From sequence record OP079919.1: 64,000 nucleotides of DNA. The stretch is one strand, 5' to 3'. This document shows positions 2,993 through 58,647 of the stretch, one piece after another. The number at the start of each line of letters is the position of its first letter. Positions within the stretch are counted from its first letter, which is position 1. The position numbers and the translations under genes are program-made. The notes below the pieces were generated by a model. The model searched no databases. It saw only the letters and a program-made list of their open reading frames with translations, and had not been told where the DNA came from.

Positions 2993-3050
2993 GCCCTGTA
3001 CTATTGTAATGGTTAACCGACCGTAAACTTTAATTAAAGGAAAAGAAGTT

Positions 3051-3332: not shown

Positions 3333-3342
3333 GTTAAGGTAA

Positions 3343-3370
3343 AGTAGGAGGGGGGTTTCCTCCTCCTACT
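3343..3370 (+). terminator. intrinsic terminator-like hairpin
   Basis: AGTAGGAGG..CCTCCTACT stem followed by T-rich tract. Confidence 0.7.
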
Positions 3371-3401
3371 CCCTCGTGTTTATTTTTTGGGAATTTCGTT
3401 A

Positions 3402-12964: not shown

Positions 12965-12972
12965 TATATTAC
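12965..12972 (+). promoter_or_regulatory. phiKZ-type early promoter core TATATTAC
   Basis: exact match to phiKZ early consensus, T-rich upstream, 43 nt before ATG 13016. Confidence 0.7.
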
Positions 12973-13015
12973 CTAAACGTATAGACAACTTCTTTTATTT
13001 AACTGGAGTAGTAAA

Positions 13016-18963: not shown

Positions 18964-18971
18964 TATATTAC
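18964..18971 (+). promoter_or_regulatory. phiKZ-type early promoter core TATATTAC
   Basis: exact match, TTTT upstream, 38 nt before ATG 19010. Confidence 0.7.
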
Positions 18972-19009
18972 CGTTATGTAAACACAACCTATCATTTAGG
19001 AAAGCCATC

Positions 19010-22381: not shown

Positions 22382-22389
22382 TATATCAC
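22382..22389 (+). promoter_or_regulatory. early promoter-like TATATCAC
   Basis: 1 mismatch, TTTT upstream, 44 nt before groEL start. Confidence 0.45.
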
Positions 22390-22433
22390 CGTCTTGATGC
22401 ACTAACCATAATCTTTTTAGGAGTATTAACATC

Positions 22434-24011
22434 GTGAACGTTCGTGGCGTAAAAGTAAAAGCAGAAACCCGTCAAATTATTGATAACACCGTAGAGCTCG
22501 TTGCAACCGCGGTAACCTCGACCATGGGCCCTAACGGCAAGCTGGTTGTTATTGACGAAACGGGTAATCCTAAAATGACCAAGGATGGGGTGACTGTAGC
22601 GCGCTCTATCCGTTTGGATGATCGGGCAATGGACATCATCGCCAAGATGATCACCGAAGCCTCGATCAAAACGGATGCCGAATGTGGCGATGGGACCACC
22701 ACCACCGTATTCTTAACAAGAGCGTTTTATAACGCCTTTAAAGATAAACTGGATTTCATGACCAAACGCCGGGTGGAAGAGTTAACGAAAGAAACGATCG
22801 AAATGCTCAAAGGAATGACGAAGGTTATTTCTCTTGATAGCCCAGTCCTTCACAATCTGGCGTTAACAACCAGTAATAACGATCTGGATATCGTGAATAA
22901 GCTCTACGATATCTTTAAGACCATACCCGATCCCATGATTGATTATCGTCGGGGTGTAACAGGTATTGACGAGATCGAATACAGTAAGGGCAAGGAATTC
23001 ACAGGCGGGTACGCGCACCCTACTTTCACTAAAGATGGAAGTGGAAGCCCGATTACGATCGAATCGGGTTATGCGTGCATCTTTGAAGGGAAGTTCAGTA
23101 TTCCAGATGACGAGTCGGAATTCCTGAGGCTCTTCGATGAGATCACTAAAAGGGGATATCGTCAGACTATCGTTATCGCACGTGAATTCGACGAACACAC
23201 CCTGATGGTGATGAACAAAATGAATCACGTTATGCTGAAGCAGAAACTGGCGGAGGAACCCGTTTTCATTCCTGTGCGGGTTCAGGCTATCGGAACAGCG
23301 GGAGTGGGGATCATTGGAGATATTGCAACCGTACTGGGGTTAAGTCCTGATGTGGACTATTTAGGTTGGAAGTCTCGTGACTATGAGGTACACTGTATTG
23401 AAAACATTACGGTAAAGGGCGCGGCATTCTTCGTGGGTAGTGTATCTGATGAAGTCTCGGAACGCACAGTAAAGCGCATCGGGCAAATTAAAGATCAAAT
23501 CGATAACTTGCCAGCTGCTCAGAAACACACGCCTTTGGCGAAGATCCTGAGACACCGTATCTCTACTCTGATGGGTAACCGAGTGACTGTAACCGTTGGA
23601 GGAGAAACCGCTTCCGACATCAAAGAACGACTGGATCGATTTGAAGACGTCGGTCGGGCTATCGCATCAGCGTTAACTAACGGCGTCCTTCCGGGCATTG
23701 GTTATTCATTGGCTTATGTTGGTAGTGAGCTGGTGAAGAAATATCCTGACGATTCTATAGTGAAACTGTACGCCGATGTATTGGGCGAGCAGCTTCACAT
23801 GTTGATGGGTCGGGAATTCAATGATCCTGAATTAGTCTATGTCAATCTGGCTACTGGGGAAACCGGTAAGCATCCTCAAGACATCAACGTCTGGGATGCG
23901 CAGTTAGCCACAGTCACTGCGTTAAGGGCTGGTGTCAGCACTGCTATCTCTTTGGCGAGCACCGATACGTTAATTATCGGTAGTCGTGCAGGTGGTGCGG
24001 ATATTCCCTGA
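22434..24011 (+). CDS. groEL: phage-encoded GroEL-like chaperonin
   Basis: TMGPNG, TKDGVTVARSI, GDGTTTT, RFED; GTG start with TAGGAG RBS. Confidence 0.95.
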   Translation: MNVRGVKVKAETRQIIDNTVELVATAVTSTMGPNGKLVVIDETGNPKMTKDGVTVARSIRLDDRAMDIIAKMITEASIKTDAECGDGTTTTVFLTRAFYNAFKDKLDFMTKRRVEELTKETIEMLKGMTKVISLDSPVLHNLALTTSNNDLDIVNKLYDIFKTIPDPMIDYRRGVTGIDEIEYSKGKEFTGGYAHPTFTKDGSGSPITIESGYACIFEGKFSIPDDESEFLRLFDEITKRGYRQTIVIAREFDEHTLMVMNKMNHVMLKQKLAEEPVFIPVRVQAIGTAGVGIIGDIATVLGLSPDVDYLGWKSRDYEVHCIENITVKGAAFFVGSVSDEVSERTVKRIGQIKDQIDNLPAAQKHTPLAKILRHRISTLMGNRVTVTVGGETASDIKERLDRFEDVGRAIASALTNGVLPGIGYSLAYVGSELVKKYPDDSIVKLYADVLGEQLHMLMGREFNDPELVYVNLATGETGKHPQDINVWDAQLATVTALRAGVSTAISLASTDTLIIGSRAGGADIP

Positions 24012-24020
24012 TGCGTTTTA

Positions 24021-24038
24021 GGGGAAGGAAACTTCCCC
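24021..24038 (+). terminator. hairpin with GAAA loop, no immediate U tract
   Basis: GGGGAAG-GAAA-CTTCCCC. Confidence 0.4.
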
Positions 24039-24053
24039 ATTGGGAGAATTTTT

Positions 24054-24311
24054 ATGGACGTTAACACTTCGTCAATTAAAAATTCTAATAATAGACAACA
24101 TAATAATTACAGCGATTCATCCTCCGCTCCGATTCAGTTGGATCGTTCGGGGGAAATTGTCGACGCCAGAACTAAGCTAACAGTTACTGGTGAAATTCCT
24201 CTTCGAAAGTTACCCACTTTCTCAAACCCACCGCAAAGAACAATAAGAGACGATAAAAAACCTTCATCACTCTGGGGGATGGTTAGAGCTCTGTTCTTTG
24301 TATTCATGTGA
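24054..24311 (+). CDS. small hypothetical protein with hydrophobic C-terminus
   Basis: GGGAG RBS. Confidence 0.6.
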   Translation: MDVNTSSIKNSNNRQHNNYSDSSSAPIQLDRSGEIVDARTKLTVTGEIPLRKLPTFSNPPQRTIRDDKKPSSLWGMVRALFFVFM

Positions 24312-24314
24312 TAC

Positions 24315-24344
24315 TATTCCTCTACCCACGTGGGTAGAGGAATA
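24315..24344 (+). terminator. perfect 30-bp palindrome / terminator
   Basis: TATTCCTCTACCCAC-GTGGGTAGAGGAATA followed by poly-T. Confidence 0.8.
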
Positions 24345-24379
24345 ATAACGCTTTTTTATTTTTTAAGGTTATCTCACTC

Positions 24380-24418
24380 ATGGCTAAAATCTATTTCTAT
24401 TACTCCTCTATTGTATAG
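24380..24418 (+). pseudogene. orphaned thymidine kinase 5' end (minigene MAKIYFYYSSIV*)
   Basis: TAAGGT RBS; first 10 codons match the TK N-terminus (cf. E. coli MAQLYFYYSAMN) and parallel the start at 25412. Confidence 0.7.
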
Positions 24419-25441
24419 TAGAAACTCTTATGGGGAAATAGAAATGTCGAAAATTAGTGGTTACAAAGAACATCCGGTAATAAAAAACCTTTTCATCCAT
24501 CCTACGGAAGATAATCACGTCCTGTATGTTAGGAAGAAAAAAGTATCTCGGATAAAGACCCATGTCGGTAAACGCGGATACGTTATTTTTACCATGTGGT
24601 TAAATGGGAAATCCAAGGGTTTTCGCTTCCACAAATTGAAAGCCGAAACGTATCTCAAGAAACCCAGTTCAGACCGCACCCTAGTCGTAAATCATAAGGA
24701 CCATGTTAAGATCAATAACGATCTCGATAACCTAGAATGGGGGACTCAGAAAGAGAATGTCGATCATTCATTAAATATCCGTCAAAAGCTTTGTCCTCTC
24801 TATCGGATAATGGATTTAACTACGGGGAGATGGTGTACAGCCGGTAGTCGTAAAGGGGTAATCGAAATGCTAGCTTGTACCCAACGACAACTCTCTAACC
24901 ATATTAAAGACCCTCGCTATCCATTGCTATTCAAGTGGGAAGTAACAAGGGGTTTTACTTGGAATCTTTCAAAAGATGACGTGGGTAAATATAACCCACG
25001 AGAGCTTCTTCCTTATGTGGTAGAAAAGAATGGCGTCGTTTTTTACCTGGCGACATTAGCTGAAGTTGGTGAATTGACAAAGATCACTAAATACAATATT
25101 ACAGTTGCTTTGAAAAATCAACCAATTCTGCATGCCAAGGGATTCAGCATTCGGTTTATTAATTCTTATGAAGAGTGGATGAAGACTGTTATTGGGAAGT
25201 CCTATATCGATACCATGTTAAATAAAAGTAATAGAAATAAAAAACGGATCGAGGTAATAAACACTCTTACGGAGGAGAAAACCACGTTAAACGGAATTAT
25301 GGAATTAATGGAACTGACTAATTATTCACGACCTACCATCGACAGGGCAATGAAAAATATGTGTGAAGATGGGTGGGTGACTTTCAAAAATCTAAAGATA
25401 AGGTTTATTTAATGGCTAAGGTATTTTTCAATTACGCTGCG
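24410..25441 (+). mobile_element. HNH homing endonuclease cassette with replacement tdk 5' end
   Basis: removing 24410-25441 joins MAKIYFYYSS to MNSGKTT in frame; boundaries approximate. Confidence 0.55.
24444..25412 (+). CDS. free-standing HNH homing endonuclease
   Basis: VNHKDHVKINNDLDNLEWGTQKENVDH HNH motif, NUMOD/HTH-like C-terminal repeats; start moved to ATG 24444. Confidence 0.9.
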   Translation: MSKISGYKEHPVIKNLFIHPTEDNHVLYVRKKKVSRIKTHVGKRGYVIFTMWLNGKSKGFRFHKLKAETYLKKPSSDRTLVVNHKDHVKINNDLDNLEWGTQKENVDHSLNIRQKLCPLYRIMDLTTGRWCTAGSRKGVIEMLACTQRQLSNHIKDPRYPLLFKWEVTRGFTWNLSKDDVGKYNPRELLPYVVEKNGVVFYLATLAEVGELTKITKYNITVALKNQPILHAKGFSIRFINSYEEWMKTVIGKSYIDTMLNKSNRNKKRIEVINTLTEEKTTLNGIMELMELTNYSRPTIDRAMKNMCEDGWVTFKNLKIRFI

Positions 25442-25999
25442 ATGAATTCGGGAAAGACTACTGGTTTGCTGCAATCAGCCTATAATTACGTTGAAAGAGG
25501 AATGTCAGTCTTACTTCTTAAACCTAAACTCGATAATAGAGAAGGAACCGATCCACTAATTAAATCAAGAATAGGATTAGAAAGCGAGTGCGTTTTTATT
25601 CCTGATGATGGGGATGAATTAGTCGACCTCATTCATAATAACAAAGGTGTTTCGGCGATATTCATCGACGAGGTTCAGTTCGTTCCAGTGCGGGTGCTTA
25701 GTGCCATCATGGTGATGTGTGACACCATGGATATTCCTCTTCTTTGCTACGGTCTCCGTAACGCTTATGACGGTAAGGGATTCCCGGGATCTGATTTCTT
25801 ATTACGTCACGCTGATAAACTGGTCGAATGCAAATCCATTTGTTGGTGCGGTAAAAAGGCCACTCACAACATGATGGTTGTCGATGGGAAAGTGGTAAGG
25901 GAAACCACATCAGGGGGAAATATGGTTGTCGGCGGTAATGAACTGTATCACGCCGTATGTCGTCAGCATTTCTTCGAAGGTAAATACAAAGACGATTAA
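25412..25999 (+). CDS. tdk: thymidine kinase
   Basis: AMNSGKT Walker A, IFIDEVQF, YGLR, zinc motifs CWCG and VCRQH; TAATG coupling to HNH. Confidence 0.97.
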   Translation: MAKVFFNYAAMNSGKTTGLLQSAYNYVERGMSVLLLKPKLDNREGTDPLIKSRIGLESECVFIPDDGDELVDLIHNNKGVSAIFIDEVQFVPVRVLSAIMVMCDTMDIPLLCYGLRNAYDGKGFPGSDFLLRHADKLVECKSICWCGKKATHNMMVVDGKVVRETTSGGNMVVGGNELYHAVCRQHFFEGKYKDD

Positions 26000-27092: not shown

Positions 27093-27100
27093 TAAGTAAC

Positions 27101-27134
27101 CTACTCCTACGTCCTTAACGGGGCGTAGGAGTAG
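27101..27134 (+). terminator. intrinsic terminator
   Basis: CTACTCCTACGTCCT-TAAC-GGGGCGTAGGAGTAG. Confidence 0.75.
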
Positions 27135-27161
27135 TTCGTTAATTATAACTGACTTTTTTAA

Positions 27162-27169
27162 TATATAAC
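27162..27169 (+). promoter_or_regulatory. early promoter-like TATATAAC
   Basis: 1 mismatch, poly-T upstream, 28 nt before ATG 27198. Confidence 0.5.
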
Positions 27170-27197
27170 CACCAACGTTCATTTAGGACATAACACC

Positions 27198-27404: not shown

Positions 27405-27416
27405 GAGGAACTGATT

Positions 27417-28847: not shown

Positions 28848-28886
28848 TAATAACTCCTACTCCCGATAAGGGAGTAGGAGTTATTA
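28848..28886. terminator. bidirectional terminator
   Basis: perfect 17-bp stem between convergent genes. Confidence 0.85.
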
Positions 28887-28898
28887 ACTTTTTTGTTT

Positions 28899-32255: not shown

Positions 32256-32273
32256 TCGATAACGCAAAGAAAC

Positions 32274-32305
32274 TATTCCTCCTACCCGTAAGGGTAGGAG
32301 GAATA
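32274..32305. terminator. bidirectional terminator, GTAA loop
   Basis: perfect 14-bp stem between convergent genes. Confidence 0.85.
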
Positions 32306-32324
32306 TATTTCTGTTATTTTTTTT

Positions 32325-42519: not shown

Positions 42520-42531
42520 TCTTATAGCCCG

Positions 42532-42559
42532 AATACTCCTACCTTAGGGTAGGAGTATT
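42532..42559 (+). terminator. intrinsic terminator
   Basis: AATACTCCTACC-TTAG-GGTAGGAGTATT. Confidence 0.75.
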
Positions 42560-42591
42560 TAACCCTATTATTTATTTTTTAGGATATCGTC

Positions 42592-52780: not shown

Positions 52781-54394
52781 ATGCAACCTACTAATATTAC
52801 GTTATTGAACCCAAACAAAGTGGCTTGGGCTCTCATGAAAGCCGTGACGTCAACAGACGTCCATGAGGGGATGACCAACAACCTTCATGAAGATGGTTTA
52901 TACTCTCCAACAATCTTCGGTCGTGTCGGTACCGACCAACGAGATAAAACTCAATCTTACATCAATGTTAAGATTCCTGTCTTCAACCCGACTTATTTTA
53001 AGGCTTTGATTGGGTTAAAGGGTTTGTATCTCGGAATAATCAAAGGGACGGAATACGCCCTTTGGGACGCATCAGAACGCGACTTCATAAAATCAAACCT
53101 CCTGGAAGGAGAAACCGGCTACGGTTTCTTTATGCGTCACTTTTACGACTTAGAGCCTAAGTTAAACGAAAGTTATAAACGCAAACAGCGCGTAGAACTC
53201 TTTAATAAATTTAAAGACATCGCGTTGACTAAAAACATTATTGTGTTGCCGGCTGGTATTCGTGATATCCAGGTTGAACCCAACGGCCAGATCGTGGAAC
53301 CTGAAATAAATGATTTCTATCGTAAACTGATCTTCCGTAGTCGCAGCGTGGTTATCCAGGAAGGTGAAGAAGATAACCCGATTTACGATAACATCCGTTG
53401 GGCGATTCAAAGCGTGTTCAACGACATCGACGATTATATCTTCCGGCTGATGGAAGGCAAGCGCGGATTCTTACAGCGCCGAGTCTCAACTCGTGGTGTC
53501 GTCGGGGGTACTCGTAACGTTATTACCGCTCGTAAAGTTTCTGTTGCTGATGCGGATGATGATAATGGGGTTGACGTTAACACCACAGATATCGGGATGT
53601 ATCAAGCGTTGCTGGGTTTCCAATACGTTGCGCGATATGCGTTACTTAAAGGTTTCTTAAGCCGCGTGTTTACGGTAGGGTCAAGTACGGCTAAACTCGT
53701 CGACCCCAGAACCTTCGAATACCAATACGTTGAAGTTGAGAGCAACATTGTTGACAAATGGTTGTCGGCCGATGGACTCACCGCTCTGTTCAACGGATTC
53801 GGAACGAGGCACTTGCGTCATAAACCGATCAAAATTAATGGCTATTACATGGGCCTGACCTATGATGACGGTAAATATGTCAAGTTACTCGGTGACGTAA
53901 CCGAACTTCCTCCTGGGTTTGATAAGAAGTTCTGCAAACCATTGACTTACATGGAACTCTTCTATTTAAGTTGTGTCGAAGAAATAGAAAAGAGAATGCT
54001 TCAGGTTACCCGCTATCCGATCACCGGGATGGGTTCTATCTATCCCAGCCTCATCAAAATCAAAACGACAACTAACGCCGAAAAAAGAATCATCTTAGAT
54101 GATTACTGGGAAGAAGGTTATCGTTGCACATACTACCCAGTCCGAGAAACTAAACCAGATTATTTCGACGCCATGAGTGTCGATGGCAGTCGGTTAGGTT
54201 TATTGGGTGGGGACTTCGATGGCGACCAACTTAACAGTAACTCCATCAACGGAGAGGATGCTATTGCTGAAGCTAAAGCTTTAATGGGCAGACGCGATTA
54301 CTATATCACCGGCACGGGGCAGTTCCTTTACAGTCCAACGGTGGAACCTCACGAATTCTTATTCCGAAATCTCAGTAACGGACTCAACCTATGA
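52781..54394 (+). CDS. virion RNA polymerase beta' subunit (phiKZ gp180-like)
   Basis: GLYSPTIFG, TRNVIT, RYPITG, catalytic GGDFDGD. Confidence 0.92.
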   Translation: MQPTNITLLNPNKVAWALMKAVTSTDVHEGMTNNLHEDGLYSPTIFGRVGTDQRDKTQSYINVKIPVFNPTYFKALIGLKGLYLGIIKGTEYALWDASERDFIKSNLLEGETGYGFFMRHFYDLEPKLNESYKRKQRVELFNKFKDIALTKNIIVLPAGIRDIQVEPNGQIVEPEINDFYRKLIFRSRSVVIQEGEEDNPIYDNIRWAIQSVFNDIDDYIFRLMEGKRGFLQRRVSTRGVVGGTRNVITARKVSVADADDDNGVDVNTTDIGMYQALLGFQYVARYALLKGFLSRVFTVGSSTAKLVDPRTFEYQYVEVESNIVDKWLSADGLTALFNGFGTRHLRHKPIKINGYYMGLTYDDGKYVKLLGDVTELPPGFDKKFCKPLTYMELFYLSCVEEIEKRMLQVTRYPITGMGSIYPSLIKIKTTTNAEKRIILDDYWEEGYRCTYYPVRETKPDYFDAMSVDGSRLGLLGGDFDGDQLNSNSINGEDAIAEAKALMGRRDYYITGTGQFLYSPTVEPHEFLFRNLSNGLNL

Positions 54395-57300
54395 GCGTAT
54401 TATACCAACAGTTCTTCCGCAATTTTGTTCTTAGGAAAAAACAAGAAATTACAAATCCTAAGTTTCACCATCTGACGGATATGGTGTTGCCGAGAGAATC
54501 GGTAATGATGTATCTACCGAAGACTCAAGAGGATATCGGCCCGAGTACCGAGGAGCCCTTAATAGGGACTTACCCTGATGGGGTTAACATTTATTTCAAC
54601 AGTCTTTATGTAACCCCCATCGGAAGAACTCGGCCCGTTCCCTTTAACGAAAAGCAATCTATACAGCTTTATCGTAAAAGCCATTTCAAATACAACTGGG
54701 CGAGGACGTTGTCCAACTACCTGAGTCGTCGTCAGGAACTGTTGGTAAACAACATAGCGATGGGACCTCATCGTCACCGTTATGTCTTTACTCGCTTTGT
54801 TCAGTTCGAACGAGCTTACAACCAACTGGCTTCTGGGATTGAAGCGGTTAAACAAATGAGTAAGGAAACGACCCGCAATCAATACTGGCGAATAGAACTT
54901 CCTCCAGCCATCCCCGATTATCGTCAGCTACTGGTAGCGGTCGATCATTACAAGAAGGCGTTCAAAGACGGCGTTTATACCACGACTGACAATCAGGCGG
55001 TACTCCCGTTTAAGGGTTACGGCTCTTATTGGATCATGGACTGGTATCTCTTCTTGATAGGCGAAAAGAACTACAGCCTGTTTAATCGCTTAGATAAAGA
55101 AGAAATGGATAAACTCCACATCATCTTTAGTCATAATGGACTCAGCTGGGTAGTTAACCTTGGTATCGTCTCTCAATGGATGGAAGAACTTAACGACAAG
55201 CACGGCAATCCCACCAGTATGCGTGTTAACGCAGCTAAACGGTTCCTGCTTGGATTTAGGGCTCTGATAGCGGGCGGCACGCTAAGTGAAACCATAGAGG
55301 AGAAACCTCATGCCGCAGAGAATGTCGGATTGGGTACTGGAACGCCAGAAGAGGAAAGAAGAAGCCAGGAAGTTAATAAGGAATCAGAAGAAGAACCGCT
55401 GGATCTCGATGAGTCTGAAGAGATTACTGATCAGTCTGTTACTATGCTTGATCTTTTCATGGGCGGCAAAAAGGCTGATACAGAATCTGATGATGACCAA
55501 GGAGGAGAGGATCCAGGAGGAGCTGATGAGAATCACGGAGAAGAGTGGGCTGCAGCGGTCGACGATGAATTACTTTATAACGCCGAAACAGAAGGATTAG
55601 GGGAAACCAAGAAAGTTATTTTCAGTACCCCGGAATCTGGTATCCTGAGAGCCTTAGAACAAAGAGCCAAGGCCGGGACATTAACTGTTGCGGAACAACG
55701 TTATTACACTAATCTCGCGCAATCATACAAAACGATCAAAATGCCTAACGGTGAAAGTCTTGAAAGTTTTGTTAAGATCGATCAGGCCAAACTTCGCCAC
55801 CTTCCTGCTAAAATTGCTCCTGAGATGAGAGGGATCATCGACCCTTCTCAGCTACAAAGTAGAGCGACAAATCTTAAAACGAAATACTCTGAAGAATTCC
55901 TTAACCGGGATATTGCCGGGATGATACTGAACATTCAGAACGCCGGTATCGTTTTAACCGACCTGAAACGTGAACGTATCGTCAATGCGGAATCGGCTTA
56001 CGACGTTTATACCATGAACGTCCATCCTGTTGGCGGATCGCCTAAGACCGCAATGTTCCGTATCCCCAAAATTGACAAAGACGGAACCTTCACTGTCGAT
56101 GGGGTAAAACAACATCTTCAACTTCAGCGTATGGAAATACCGATTCGTAAGATAAACTCGGAGCAGGTTGCTTTGACGAGTTATTATGACCGCAAGATCA
56201 TGATGTCTCGTTCTACCAAGGTCGCCGACGATTACGGATTGTGGCTGAACAAACAGCTTATTCTGTTGGGTGAAGCCGGTAAAGTATCTGGGGTGTTGGG
56301 CGATGTCTATAATCGTAGTTACGCTGTTCCTCGTACTTATTCTGCGTTAGCCAAACGGTATCGGTCATTAAAGGCGGGCGGGATTGAATTCAACTTCGAT
56401 CTTTCTAGTCTTGTTGGATCAGAGAAAGAAATCAATAAGCTGATTTCTCCTAACTGGGTTCCGGTGGCTAAAGAAGGTGACGACTTCATCTTTATGGATG
56501 ATGGTGGTAACCTTTACAAAGATAAGACGCACATTGGTTCTTTCGAAAGCCGCTGTGGAATTGACACGACGAAAGCCCCAGTCGATATCGTTACAGTGAA
56601 TGTAAACGGATACGCTTTCCCTATCGGGGTAGTGCTCGCTTACTACTTCGGATTCGACGAACTTCTTAAAGCACTCAATGCTGACTATCGGACCGTTCCG
56701 GCCGGTGAGAAAGTTCGGATGGGTCAGGACGAATACGCGATAACCTTTAACGATGAAACGCTCATTTTCAACAGACGGGATAGTTTAACCGCACTCATTA
56801 TGGGTGGGTTCCGGAAGTTAGCGAATTTGAGTAACTTCTCTCGTTATGACCTAAACACGAAAGGTGTGTGGGTGCCGGCTATCGGGGATAAGAAAGTCAA
56901 ACCAGGTCATTTTGATGAAATGCGTTTGATGTTCGAAATGTTCATCGATCCTATCACCAAATCTGAGCTGGTTAAAAGGGGTTATCCGACCGAGCTTCAT
57001 TATCTCATGATCGAAGGCGTCAAAATGCTGAACACCGATCGGACTGCTCACGAGATAGAATTAACTGAGCAACGTTTCGTTGGGTATGAACGTTTCGCCG
57101 GACGGGTCTATAACGAAATTGTTAAGTCGACTCGTCAATTCAGAAATAAAGGTAATGACAAACGTTTCACCTTCGATATGAACCCTGAAGCGGTTATCAT
57201 GAGTATCATTACCGATACAAGTGTAAACCTAGTTGAAGAGGTTAACCCCATCCACGAAATCAAAGAACAGGAAGTTGTTACCTTTGGTGGTACTGGTGGG

Positions 57301-58647
57301 CGAAGTGAAACGACAATGGTCAGACGTACACGTGGTCAGCAAGAGAACTATGCTGGGGTTATCTCCGAGGCTGGTAAAGACTCCGGTAAAGTTGGGTTCG
57401 TGAGTTACTTAACGAGCAACCCTAAGATCGCCGATTTCCGTGGTAACGTCGACCTAAGCATGCCTGACACTCTGAGCGGCAGACTGTCGGTAACATCCAA
57501 CCTTTTAGCTCACTCGACCTCCGATGACCCCAAACGTGCTCTGTTCTCCGGGGTACAGCAAAGCCAGGGGGTATCTGCGACTAACTATCAAACCAACTGG
57601 TTACGTACCGGGGATGAATTGGTTATCGCACACCGGACATCCGAGCTTTATTCTAAACCAGCTAAACTCGACGGTAAAGTAATAAAGCTTACCAAAGAAG
57701 GCTTGGTGGTCGAATACAAGGATGGAACGACGGACAGTTATCCGTTAGGCTTAACCATCGGCAGTGCGTCTGGTGAATTCCACAGACACACAAGAGTCAC
57801 TGATTTAAAAGTCGGTGATAGTTTCAATGCCGGAGATATCATCGGTTGGGACGAAATGTACTTTGAAAGGGATTTGGCTAACCCTAATCAGGTGGCGTGG
57901 AAATGCGGGGTAATGGTGAGGATTGCCTTTGTTGAGAATCAGTTCACGTTTGAAGACTCCATTGAGGTTTCTAAAGACTTCGCTGAGCAGACGAAAACAC
58001 CTTATTTGAAGTTGAAAGAATTCTCTTTAGACTTCGAACAAACTCTCGTCCCTCACGTAGAAGTCGGGTCGGAAGTCGACATGGACGCGATTTTATGCTC
58101 GATAGAGGATCCCCACGTAAGTGGTCTGGACGATTCTGATGACACTTTCTCAGGATTAGAGCGTTTAGGGGTTAAACAAATTCGGTCTAACCATCATGGC
58201 CGTGTTGTTAAAATTGAGTGTGTTTATAACGGTTCAATTGAAGACATGTCAGATAGCCTGAAAGGGTTTGTGACTAAGTTAGATAAAGAACGTCAACAGC
58301 TCAATAAGGTCACTCACACCGGGATCGTTAACGGTAACGTTGGGGGAAACACGTATGTTAAGAAAGCCAGTGTTGAACCTAATCGGGTTACGGTTAAAAT
58401 CTTTATTGAGGATCTCAATAGCTCCGAAACCGCCGATAAATTTGTGGTCGGTAACCAGATGAAGGGTACCGTGGGGAATATCGTGAACTACACAATGCGT
58501 ACACTGGATGGCCGTATTGTCAAGATTCGATTCTCATTTAAATCGATGTTCAACCGTATGGTTCTGAGCTTACGAGATAAAATGGGTATCAATGAAGTTA
58601 ACGCCAACCGCACTTCGGCAGCAGTTAAAGCTTTCAGAGGAAAATAA
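54391..58647 (+). CDS. virion RNA polymerase beta subunit (phiKZ gp178-like)
   Basis: GTGGRS, DSGKVG, DDPKRALF..VQ, FEDS, DKFVVGNQMKGTV; 1418 aa. Confidence 0.92.
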   Translation: MSVLYQQFFRNFVLRKKQEITNPKFHHLTDMVLPRESVMMYLPKTQEDIGPSTEEPLIGTYPDGVNIYFNSLYVTPIGRTRPVPFNEKQSIQLYRKSHFKYNWARTLSNYLSRRQELLVNNIAMGPHRHRYVFTRFVQFERAYNQLASGIEAVKQMSKETTRNQYWRIELPPAIPDYRQLLVAVDHYKKAFKDGVYTTTDNQAVLPFKGYGSYWIMDWYLFLIGEKNYSLFNRLDKEEMDKLHIIFSHNGLSWVVNLGIVSQWMEELNDKHGNPTSMRVNAAKRFLLGFRALIAGGTLSETIEEKPHAAENVGLGTGTPEEERRSQEVNKESEEEPLDLDESEEITDQSVTMLDLFMGGKKADTESDDDQGGEDPGGADENHGEEWAAAVDDELLYNAETEGLGETKKVIFSTPESGILRALEQRAKAGTLTVAEQRYYTNLAQSYKTIKMPNGESLESFVKIDQAKLRHLPAKIAPEMRGIIDPSQLQSRATNLKTKYSEEFLNRDIAGMILNIQNAGIVLTDLKRERIVNAESAYDVYTMNVHPVGGSPKTAMFRIPKIDKDGTFTVDGVKQHLQLQRMEIPIRKINSEQVALTSYYDRKIMMSRSTKVADDYGLWLNKQLILLGEAGKVSGVLGDVYNRSYAVPRTYSALAKRYRSLKAGGIEFNFDLSSLVGSEKEINKLISPNWVPVAKEGDDFIFMDDGGNLYKDKTHIGSFESRCGIDTTKAPVDIVTVNVNGYAFPIGVVLAYYFGFDELLKALNADYRTVPAGEKVRMGQDEYAITFNDETLIFNRRDSLTALIMGGFRKLANLSNFSRYDLNTKGVWVPAIGDKKVKPGHFDEMRLMFEMFIDPITKSELVKRGYPTELHYLMIEGVKMLNTDRTAHEIELTEQRFVGYERFAGRVYNEIVKSTRQFRNKGNDKRFTFDMNPEAVIMSIITDTSVNLVEEVNPIHEIKEQEVVTFGGTGGRSETTMVRRTRGQQENYAGVISEAGKDSGKVGFVSYLTSNPKIADFRGNVDLSMPDTLSGRLSVTSNLLAHSTSDDPKRALFSGVQQSQGVSATNYQTNWLRTGDELVIAHRTSELYSKPAKLDGKVIKLTKEGLVVEYKDGTTDSYPLGLTIGSASGEFHRHTRVTDLKVGDSFNAGDIIGWDEMYFERDLANPNQVAWKCGVMVRIAFVENQFTFEDSIEVSKDFAEQTKTPYLKLKEFSLDFEQTLVPHVEVGSEVDMDAILCSIEDPHVSGLDDSDDTFSGLERLGVKQIRSNHHGRVVKIECVYNGSIEDMSDSLKGFVTKLDKERQQLNKVTHTGIVNGNVGGNTYVKKASVEPNRVTVKIFIEDLNSSETADKFVVGNQMKGTVGNIVNYTMRTLDGRIVKIRFSFKSMFNRMVLSLRDKMGINEVNANRTSAAVKAFRGK

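Follow-up and report, generated by a model that had tools for sequence, protein, structure and literature searches.

Introduction

Whether the remnant of a gene invaded by a homing endonuclease can come to control the translation of the invader is the question raised by a locus of Klebsiella phage KPN8 (OP079919.1, 256.6 kb), in which the first codons of a thymidine kinase gene (tdk) stand upstream of a gene for an HNH endonuclease and are complementary to its ribosome-binding site (RBS). The window, which is the whole stretch of DNA that was analysed, comprises 64,000 nucleotides (nt); its positions, used throughout, are obtained by subtracting 124,000 from those of the KPN8 record, and the features of the locus lie on the + strand. 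According to the original prediction, made from the letters of this window, the tdk remnant folds into a hairpin over the Shine-Dalgarno (SD) sequence and the AUG of the HNH gene, has been exapted for that role and is itself a translatable upstream open reading frame (uORF) able to melt the stem, with a promoter-like sequence in the loop; RNA folding was proposed as a check.

The 2.4 kb around the hairpin are 100% identical to KPN8, whose relatives belong to the Miami group of jumbo myophages. Eight genomes were compared at this locus, namely six that carry the cassette with the HNH gene (KPN8, BUCTxx100, phiKp_32, VB_ZK_P1 and two Logan contigs) and two phages without the HNH gene (Miami and YC1).

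Insertion of an HNH cassette in tdk

Alignment with Miami and YC1 shows, at the level of sequence, that the tdk gene of a Klebsiella jumbo phage, Miami-like and of phiKZ type, was invaded by an HNH cassette between codon 10 and the P-loop codons next to it. In both HNH-less phages the site is uninterrupted and both flanks match, so that a terminator-like hairpin, a U-run, an AAGG SD and an ATG lead straight into tdk. The cassette absent from them (24410-25441) is 1,032 bp long in all six carriers and consists of a 34-nt leader, the HNH gene, a new tdk SD and 10 replacement tdk codons, its left junction being ambiguous by 2 nt (AT). Upstream of it stands the stump, the first 10 codons of the original tdk (24380-24409), whose 30 nt line up one by one with the beginning of tdk in Miami and YC1, with 5 differences, and the original tdk SD AAGGT (24365-24369), the same bases that are annotated as the tdk ribosome_binding_site in Miami. 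The 80 nt upstream of the stump are invariant in all eight genomes. The terminator-like hairpin of 13 bp predicted there (24315-24327/24332-24344, followed by a U-rich run at 24352-24364) is native to the locus, as it is identical in Miami and YC1, where it also precedes tdk, and is labelled 'terminator' in the Miami record. The empty sites and the collinear stump thus confirm the identification of this segment as a tdk remnant, within which the whole 5' arm of the hairpin was correctly placed.

The stump continues into the insert as a uORF of 12 codons (24380-24418; translation MAKIYFYYSSIV, then stop), in which two codons and the UAG are contributed by the cassette. This frame is intact in each of the six HNH-carrying genomes and keeps the RBS that serves tdk in the HNH-less phages, in agreement with the claim of a translatable uORF; from the homology with Miami and YC1 we infer that the old tdk RBS and ATG work for it. 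The HNH gene (24444-25412, 322 amino acids) has a Pfam HNH_3 match (PF13392, residues 79-106, E = 1.6e-6, 28.1 bits against a cutoff of 24.8) and weak helix-turn-helix matches at the C-terminus of its product. In the KPN8 record its start is put at GTG 24330, inside the terminator hairpin, which is probably a miscall, the start annotated in relatives being ATG 24444. The same record starts tdk at GTG 25373, and here ATG 25412 is the better choice, both by homology with Miami and by the way in which relatives are annotated. From that ATG the functional thymidine kinase gene (25412-25999; Pfam TK, E = 4.9e-35) is intact. Its first 10 codons (25412-25441) are derived from the cassette, 9 of their 30 nt being different in Miami, and the P-loop codons (MNSGKT) begin directly after them at 25442. 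With a cassette-borne SD (AAGG, 25400-25403), an HNH stop that overlaps the tdk start in TAATG (25410-25414) and ten recoded codons, tdk remains whole because the cassette itself supplies this SD and these codons.

The sequences on either side of the insert bear the marks expected from homing. To its right, 8-21 mismatches per 60 nt against Miami extend over about 120, 240, 420 or 600 nt depending on the genome and then fall to about zero, while to the left of the stump there are essentially no mismatches to Miami for at least 300 nt. Such a gradient in tdk is what co-conversion should leave when a divergent donor has homed repeatedly. The replacement tdk start of four genomes is moreover chimeric, its first 18 nt being of donor type and its last 12 of recipient type. 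The HNH frame is open in all six copies, with zero stop codons, and its ratio of nonsynonymous to synonymous substitution rates (dN/dS) is 0.12 (range 0.06-0.23), with a synonymous divergence (dS) of 0.25-0.29 between two cassette haplotypes. The graded co-conversion tracts together with this dN/dS indicate that the HNH cassette is an active homing element. As judged from these features, an HNH motif, a presence/absence polymorphism at one site, a decaying co-conversion and a constrained frame are found together here, as in a free-standing HNH homing endonuclease.

Whether the 3' arm of the hairpin predates the tdk stump was approached through a search for a donor. In 50,697 phage records searched by tblastn, in IMG/VR, in JGI metagenomes and among 5.8 billion proteins, the HNH gene was found in no other context than that of the six carriers. 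The next-best homologue is 29% identical along the full length (45% in a fragment of 22%), and none exceeded 45% in the collections searched.

Apart from the hairpin, the locus is a clean natural case of homing without an intron, in which the empty site is at hand, the insert is precise, the gene start has been replaced and co-conversion is graded, and it marks the P-loop region of tdk as a target of homing among Klebsiella jumbo phages. Such homing elements are described, in a passage of PMC2330249, as excluding the markers of co-infecting relatives, which could matter wherever related phages infect one cell.

Predicted hairpin over the HNH ribosome-binding site

The 5' arm of the hairpin (TATTTCTATTACTCC, 24392-24406) corresponds to codons 5-9 of the uORF, and the 3' arm (GGGGAAATAGAAATG, 24432-24446) comprises the SD-like GGGG of the HNH gene (24432-24435), a spacer of 8 nt and the AUG (24444-24446). 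The arms pair antiparallel at 14 of 15 positions, with 12 Watson-Crick pairs, two G-U pairs and a single A-A mismatch (24402/24436), exactly as had been predicted, and the same pair of arms was returned by a repeat finder. The predicted burial of the SD and the AUG was likewise reproduced by folding with ViennaRNA, which gives the stem in every context used (81, 104, 171 and 221 nt), in the minimum free energy structure and in the centroid, with predicted pairing probabilities in KPN8 of 1.0 for the SD and 0.91 for the AUG. Upon removal of the 5' arm, leaving a leader of 40 nt, the pairing of the AUG falls to 0.08.

How unusual such a structure is was gauged against shuffled sequences and against the other gene starts of the window. 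The 81-nt fold has an energy of -17.0 kcal/mol, compared with -10.95 +/- 2.72 kcal/mol in dinucleotide shuffles (z = -2.2), and 4 of 200 shuffles are as stable. When the segment from -64 to +17 was folded around each of the 78 annotated starts in the window, the mean pairing probability over positions -13 to +3 was 0.86 at the HNH start, the second highest, and the only start found to be more occluded is a doubtful UUG. The duplex formed by the stump with the HNH RBS (-14.8 kcal/mol) ranks first among the 78 RBSs and is matched or exceeded by 0.5% of 18,276 segments of the window. These comparisons lead us to regard the stem as real and as moderately improbable (roughly 0.5-3%), though not extraordinary. 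An Rfam scan of 24000-25600 returned nothing at the gathering score.

A second complementarity exists between the stump (24398-24410) and the 3' arm of the terminator (24335-24347), at 12 of 13 positions and with -14.9 kcal/mol, which gives an attenuator-like layout of segments 1:2, 2:3 and 3:4. An attenuator-like mechanism was rejected, since this pairing is confined to KPN8 and BUCTxx100 (-9.6 in the others) and the RBS stem is not displaced in constrained folds.

A candidate mask opened by translation of the stump

The reading that we favour, and to which we give about an even chance, is that the HNH start carries an RBS mask like those of T4 and Aeh1, which would be opened mainly by translation of the stump uORF. 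On a polycistronic or read-through mRNA, codons 5-9 of the uORF would pair with the HNH SD and AUG, so that the RBS would be masked by default and translation of the endonuclease held low. Translating ribosomes are known to act as helicases and to occupy a footprint on the mRNA. A ribosome loaded at the old tdk RBS would translate the stump, unwind the whole 5' arm and terminate at the UAG (24416-24418), which lies 13 nt ahead of the SD and 25 nt ahead of the AUG; there its footprint would end just short of the SD. The SD and the AUG would then be exposed to a fresh 30S subunit, to reinitiation 25 nt downstream or to both, and HNH synthesis would be coupled to the former initiation signal of tdk, so that its output would follow the old rate of tdk initiation as a damped fraction of it. 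Transcripts starting inside the hairpin might provide a second route of release. The tdk gene itself need not depend on HNH translation, because it has the cassette-borne SD and its AUG is unoccluded (pairing 0.26).

A stronger form of this proposal, in which the homing cassette has made a translational operator for itself out of the severed 5' end of the gene that it targets, with translation of the stump as the switch and the HNH protein made only as a set fraction of the old signal, is offered tentatively and seems to us rather unlikely. If the mask works, it would also illustrate how the scar of its own insertion can be turned by a selfish gene into a regulator.

Folding of the mRNA before it meets ribosomes may also be of relevance. 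The Chimalliviridae have been described as uncoupling transcription from translation (PMC12908238), so that in a phage nucleus, if one is formed, mRNAs would reach the ribosomes fully folded and a thermodynamic mask would be more effective. We infer nucleus formation in the KPN8 clade. Miami has 124 proteins in common with the Erwinia phages RisingSun and Joad (PMC7844079), and a study of chimallin-encoding, nucleus-forming phages took Miami as a distant relative of Erwinia phage RAY (bioRxiv 10.1101/2023.02.24.529968).

Fortuitous pairing as the main alternative

The main rival of a translation-opened mask is a compositional accident, in which the pairing is fortuitous and has no regulatory role, the stump being a young, undecayed scar of an illegitimate or short-homology left junction; we regard it as a serious contender, while not thinking it probable. 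Pyrimidines prevail in codons 5-9 of tdk (Tyr/Phe/Ser) and purines in the HNH RBS, which has a GAAAU repeat, so that the two could pair by composition, and a series of results weighs on this side. Three unrelated RBSs of the window pair with the stump nearly as well as that of HNH does, at -14.2, -14.1 and -13.3 kcal/mol, and the complementarity is therefore in part the generic one of pyrimidine-rich codons with a purine-rich RBS, the UACUCC-type sequence of the stump being in effect a generic anti-SD. Even the tdk start of Miami, unmodified as it is, reaches -12.8 kcal/mol in pairing with the HNH RBS, within the top 2% of segments, and much of the complementarity may therefore have been there by chance when the insertion took place. 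The HNH RBS can also pair elsewhere: when the uORF is blocked in silico, it partly re-pairs with the upstream U-run, with an SD pairing of 0.66.

Comparison of the carriers points in the same direction. The six fall into two haplotypes, KPN8 and BUCTxx100 on one side and the remaining four on the other. In the former the stem of 14 out of 15 pairs folds with -17.0 and -17.3 kcal/mol, respectively (z = -2.2 and -2.5). In the other four, TTTCACTTACTCT is found where the KPN8 type has TTTCTATTACTCC, breaking two pairs and converting one C-G into U-G; the two to three substitutions in their 5' arm weaken the stem, and the 3' arm is unchanged. The fold of this phiKp_32 type attains only -13.6 kcal/mol (z = -0.96), with an AUG pairing of 0.35. 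Covariation is absent among the six carriers, as 11 of the 15 pairs never vary, three are only broken and one changes from C-G to U-G. The haplotypes differ at 4 of 30 nt in the stump, at none of the upstream 80 nt and at one position of the 34-nt leader, which makes the stump the most divergent local segment, and it thus looks like a patch exchanged with recipient tdk starts in the course of homing and not like a constrained arm. The idea that the 5' arm was exapted, in the sense of having been selected for its role, gains no support from these comparisons, given the zero compensatory changes, the weakening nature of the arm substitutions and the divergence of the stump. On the opposite arm, the HNH RBS and AUG are invariant in all six carriers, and the 34-nt leader is no more alike between haplotypes than are the first 300 nt of HNH (about 3% difference in both); a specific constraint on the leader therefore cannot be claimed.

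An accident must, however, also account for the second rank of the HNH start in occlusion, for the small fraction of window segments that pair as well and for the few shuffles that fold as stably. Furthermore, the best fold of the phiKp_32 type slips by six bases and still keeps the SD paired at 0.88, and RBS hairpins recur, as experimentally shown, at phage homing endonuclease genes (PMC2988022). In our judgement a mask opened by stump translation stays ahead of chance pairing.

Promoter switch and DNA operator as minor alternatives

Two further explanations are minor rivals. In the first, a temporal switch in the style of T4, early or read-through transcripts would be silenced by the hairpin and a later internal promoter would give translated transcripts lacking the 5' arm. 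An exact precedent is provided by I-TevI and Aeh1 mobE (PMC2988022), and in KPN8 a transcript without the 5' arm would have a free AUG, as found in the fold of the 40-nt leader. The phage has its own multisubunit RNA polymerase beta-type genes in the same window (52781-58647), and in view of these and of its kinship with the Miami group the promoter logic of T4 is not to be assumed. The original prediction regarded the loop as promoter-like because of its similarity to a site at 3002, and this was not substantiated. The 8-mer common to the loop and to position 3001, CTATTGTA, has 3 occurrences in the window where 1.5 are expected and was rejected as a promoter motif, the loop sequence TATTGTATAGT being unenriched along with it, and a sigma-70 promoter scan gave zero sites in the hairpin. 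The sole recurrent intergenic motif found in the window is CTATAT(T/C)ACC (4 matches against 0.95 expected), located upstream of + strand gene blocks at 12965-12973, 18964-18972, 22382-22390 and 54302-54310, and it is missing from the hairpin loop. It is probably an early promoter element of the clade, used by the virion RNA polymerase, which fits the AT-rich early-promoter elements of RNA-polymerase-encoding jumbo phages (PMC7598289).

Middle and late promoters of such phages are unpredictable from sequence, the late element of phiKZ being merely T(-3)ATG(+1) (PMC7598289). A TATG of this type lies at 24429-24432, is conserved in the six carriers and would place G(+1) at the first base of the 3' arm and of the HNH SD; in a transcript beginning there the RBS would be free, as judged from the fold of the short leader. 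As a mere 4-mer, for which 0.14 occurrences are expected by chance in the hairpin and which shows no enrichment upstream of genes (10 of 78, compared with 10% of random windows), it is a lead that is statistically uninformative. We hold a temporal switch to be improbable as the main way in which the HNH RBS would be released and prefer a translation-opened mask to it. Less probable still is an operator at the DNA level, in which the HNH start would mimic an inverted part of the tdk homing site and be bound and repressed by the endonuclease, for even though I-TevI and, by inference, I-TevII and I-TevIII have homing-site-like operators near their own starts (PMC2988022) and tdk codons 5-9, which adjoin the insertion site, have their reverse complement in the 3' arm, the similarity spans at most 15 nt that the RNA stem already accounts for, its orientation is inverted, and there is no known promoter at this start for the protein to occlude.

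Comparison with known systems

RBS-sequestering hairpins are known at I-TevI, I-TevII, I-TevIII, segB and Aeh1 mobE (reviewed in PMC2988022), and the I-TevI and Aeh1 mobE precedent invoked in the original prediction is correct. KPN8 resembles the T-even cases (I-TevI in td, I-TevII, I-TevIII and segB) and Aeh1 mobE in nrdA in having a stem over the SD of a homing endonuclease gene situated on a polycistron of nucleotide metabolism, and the expected effect, low or delayed translation of the endonuclease (PMC2988022), is the same, albeit only predicted in KPN8. In the T-even phages and Aeh1, release occurs via a mapped late promoter inside the hairpin, whereas in KPN8, with its phiKZ-type RNA polymerases, no such promoter has been identified. 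Unlike in those systems, the 5' arm in KPN8 is a coding relic of the decapitated target gene with an RBS of its own, so that translation, and not the choice of promoter, is the likeliest opener. The KPN8 stem is also weaker than the T-even and Aeh1 stems and is not conserved across carriers. Since conservation is lacking and an internal promoter would be conjectural, we do not count it among the established hairpins of the I-TevI/segB/mobE type.

Opening by translation has a model in translational coupling by unmasking, as in the MS2 coat and replicase genes, where translation of the upstream open reading frame melts a structure over the next RBS. The uORF of KPN8 similarly overlaps the 5' arm and has its stop 25 nt before the downstream AUG. 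Unlike in MS2, this upstream frame is a 12-codon relic without a product of its own, and the coupling is a prediction only.

Fragments of host genes left by insertion are known from other homing systems. Free-standing GIY-YIG and LAGLIDADG genes of fungal mitochondria are accompanied by partial duplications of the atp9 N-terminus, atp6 and cox1 (PMC7487136), and Aeh1 mobE splits nrdA. As in these cases (PMC7487136, PMC3045599), the insertion in KPN8 brings a second copy of an end of the host gene and leaves a pseudogene fragment behind, but the duplication is limited to 30 nt at the 5' end and the gene itself is not split. The insertion differs further from the fungal cases in occurring in a phage and not in an organelle, and in that the fragment keeps what is, by homology, a live RBS.

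Among nucleus-forming jumbo phages, gp210 of PhiPA3 is a homing endonuclease encoded by an intron within an RNA polymerase gene (PMC11620839), and homing endonucleases are active among phiKZ-like jumbo phages in both instances. In contrast to gp210, the HNH gene of KPN8 is free-standing, lies in tdk and has no intron; the 29% identity given above is that of its best match outside the KPN8 clade in the phage collection, gp210 itself not being among the proteins compared. If the mask works, it would be, as far as the literature found goes, the first translational control of a homing endonuclease in phiKZ-type jumbo phages, which are without the promoter classes of T4.

Additional observations on the compared genomes

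BUCTxx100, whose recorded host is Stenotrophomonas maltophilia, is 99.2% identical over the locus to the Klebsiella phage KPN8, which makes its host label or host range questionable. Two genes upstream of the locus (22434-24011) lies a GroEL-like chaperonin gene (Cpn60_TCP1, E = 5e-19), in a patch of which Miami differs from both KPN8 and YC1 (10, 17 and 4 mismatches per 60 nt), pointing to mosaicism.

The Raoultella phage VB_ZK_P1 has an additional gene at 455-1594 of its compared stretch, which encodes a TnpB of 379 amino acids (OrfB_IS605, E = 3e-28; Cas12f1-like TNB domain; HTH_OrfB). It sits between the homologues of KPN8_196 and KPN8_197 and is absent from KPN8, where the empty site is at about 27405-27410, and represents an IS605-type element in a phiKZ-type jumbo phage. 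This gene had been considered as a second homing endonuclease for a class-level test and was rejected, being a TnpB.

Many intergenic terminator-like hairpins of the window share the stem core CTCCTAC ... GTAGGAG (3333-3386, 27093-27197, 28848-28898, 32256-32324 and 42520-42591), which points to one terminator module that is repeated, and not to hairpins that are independent of each other.

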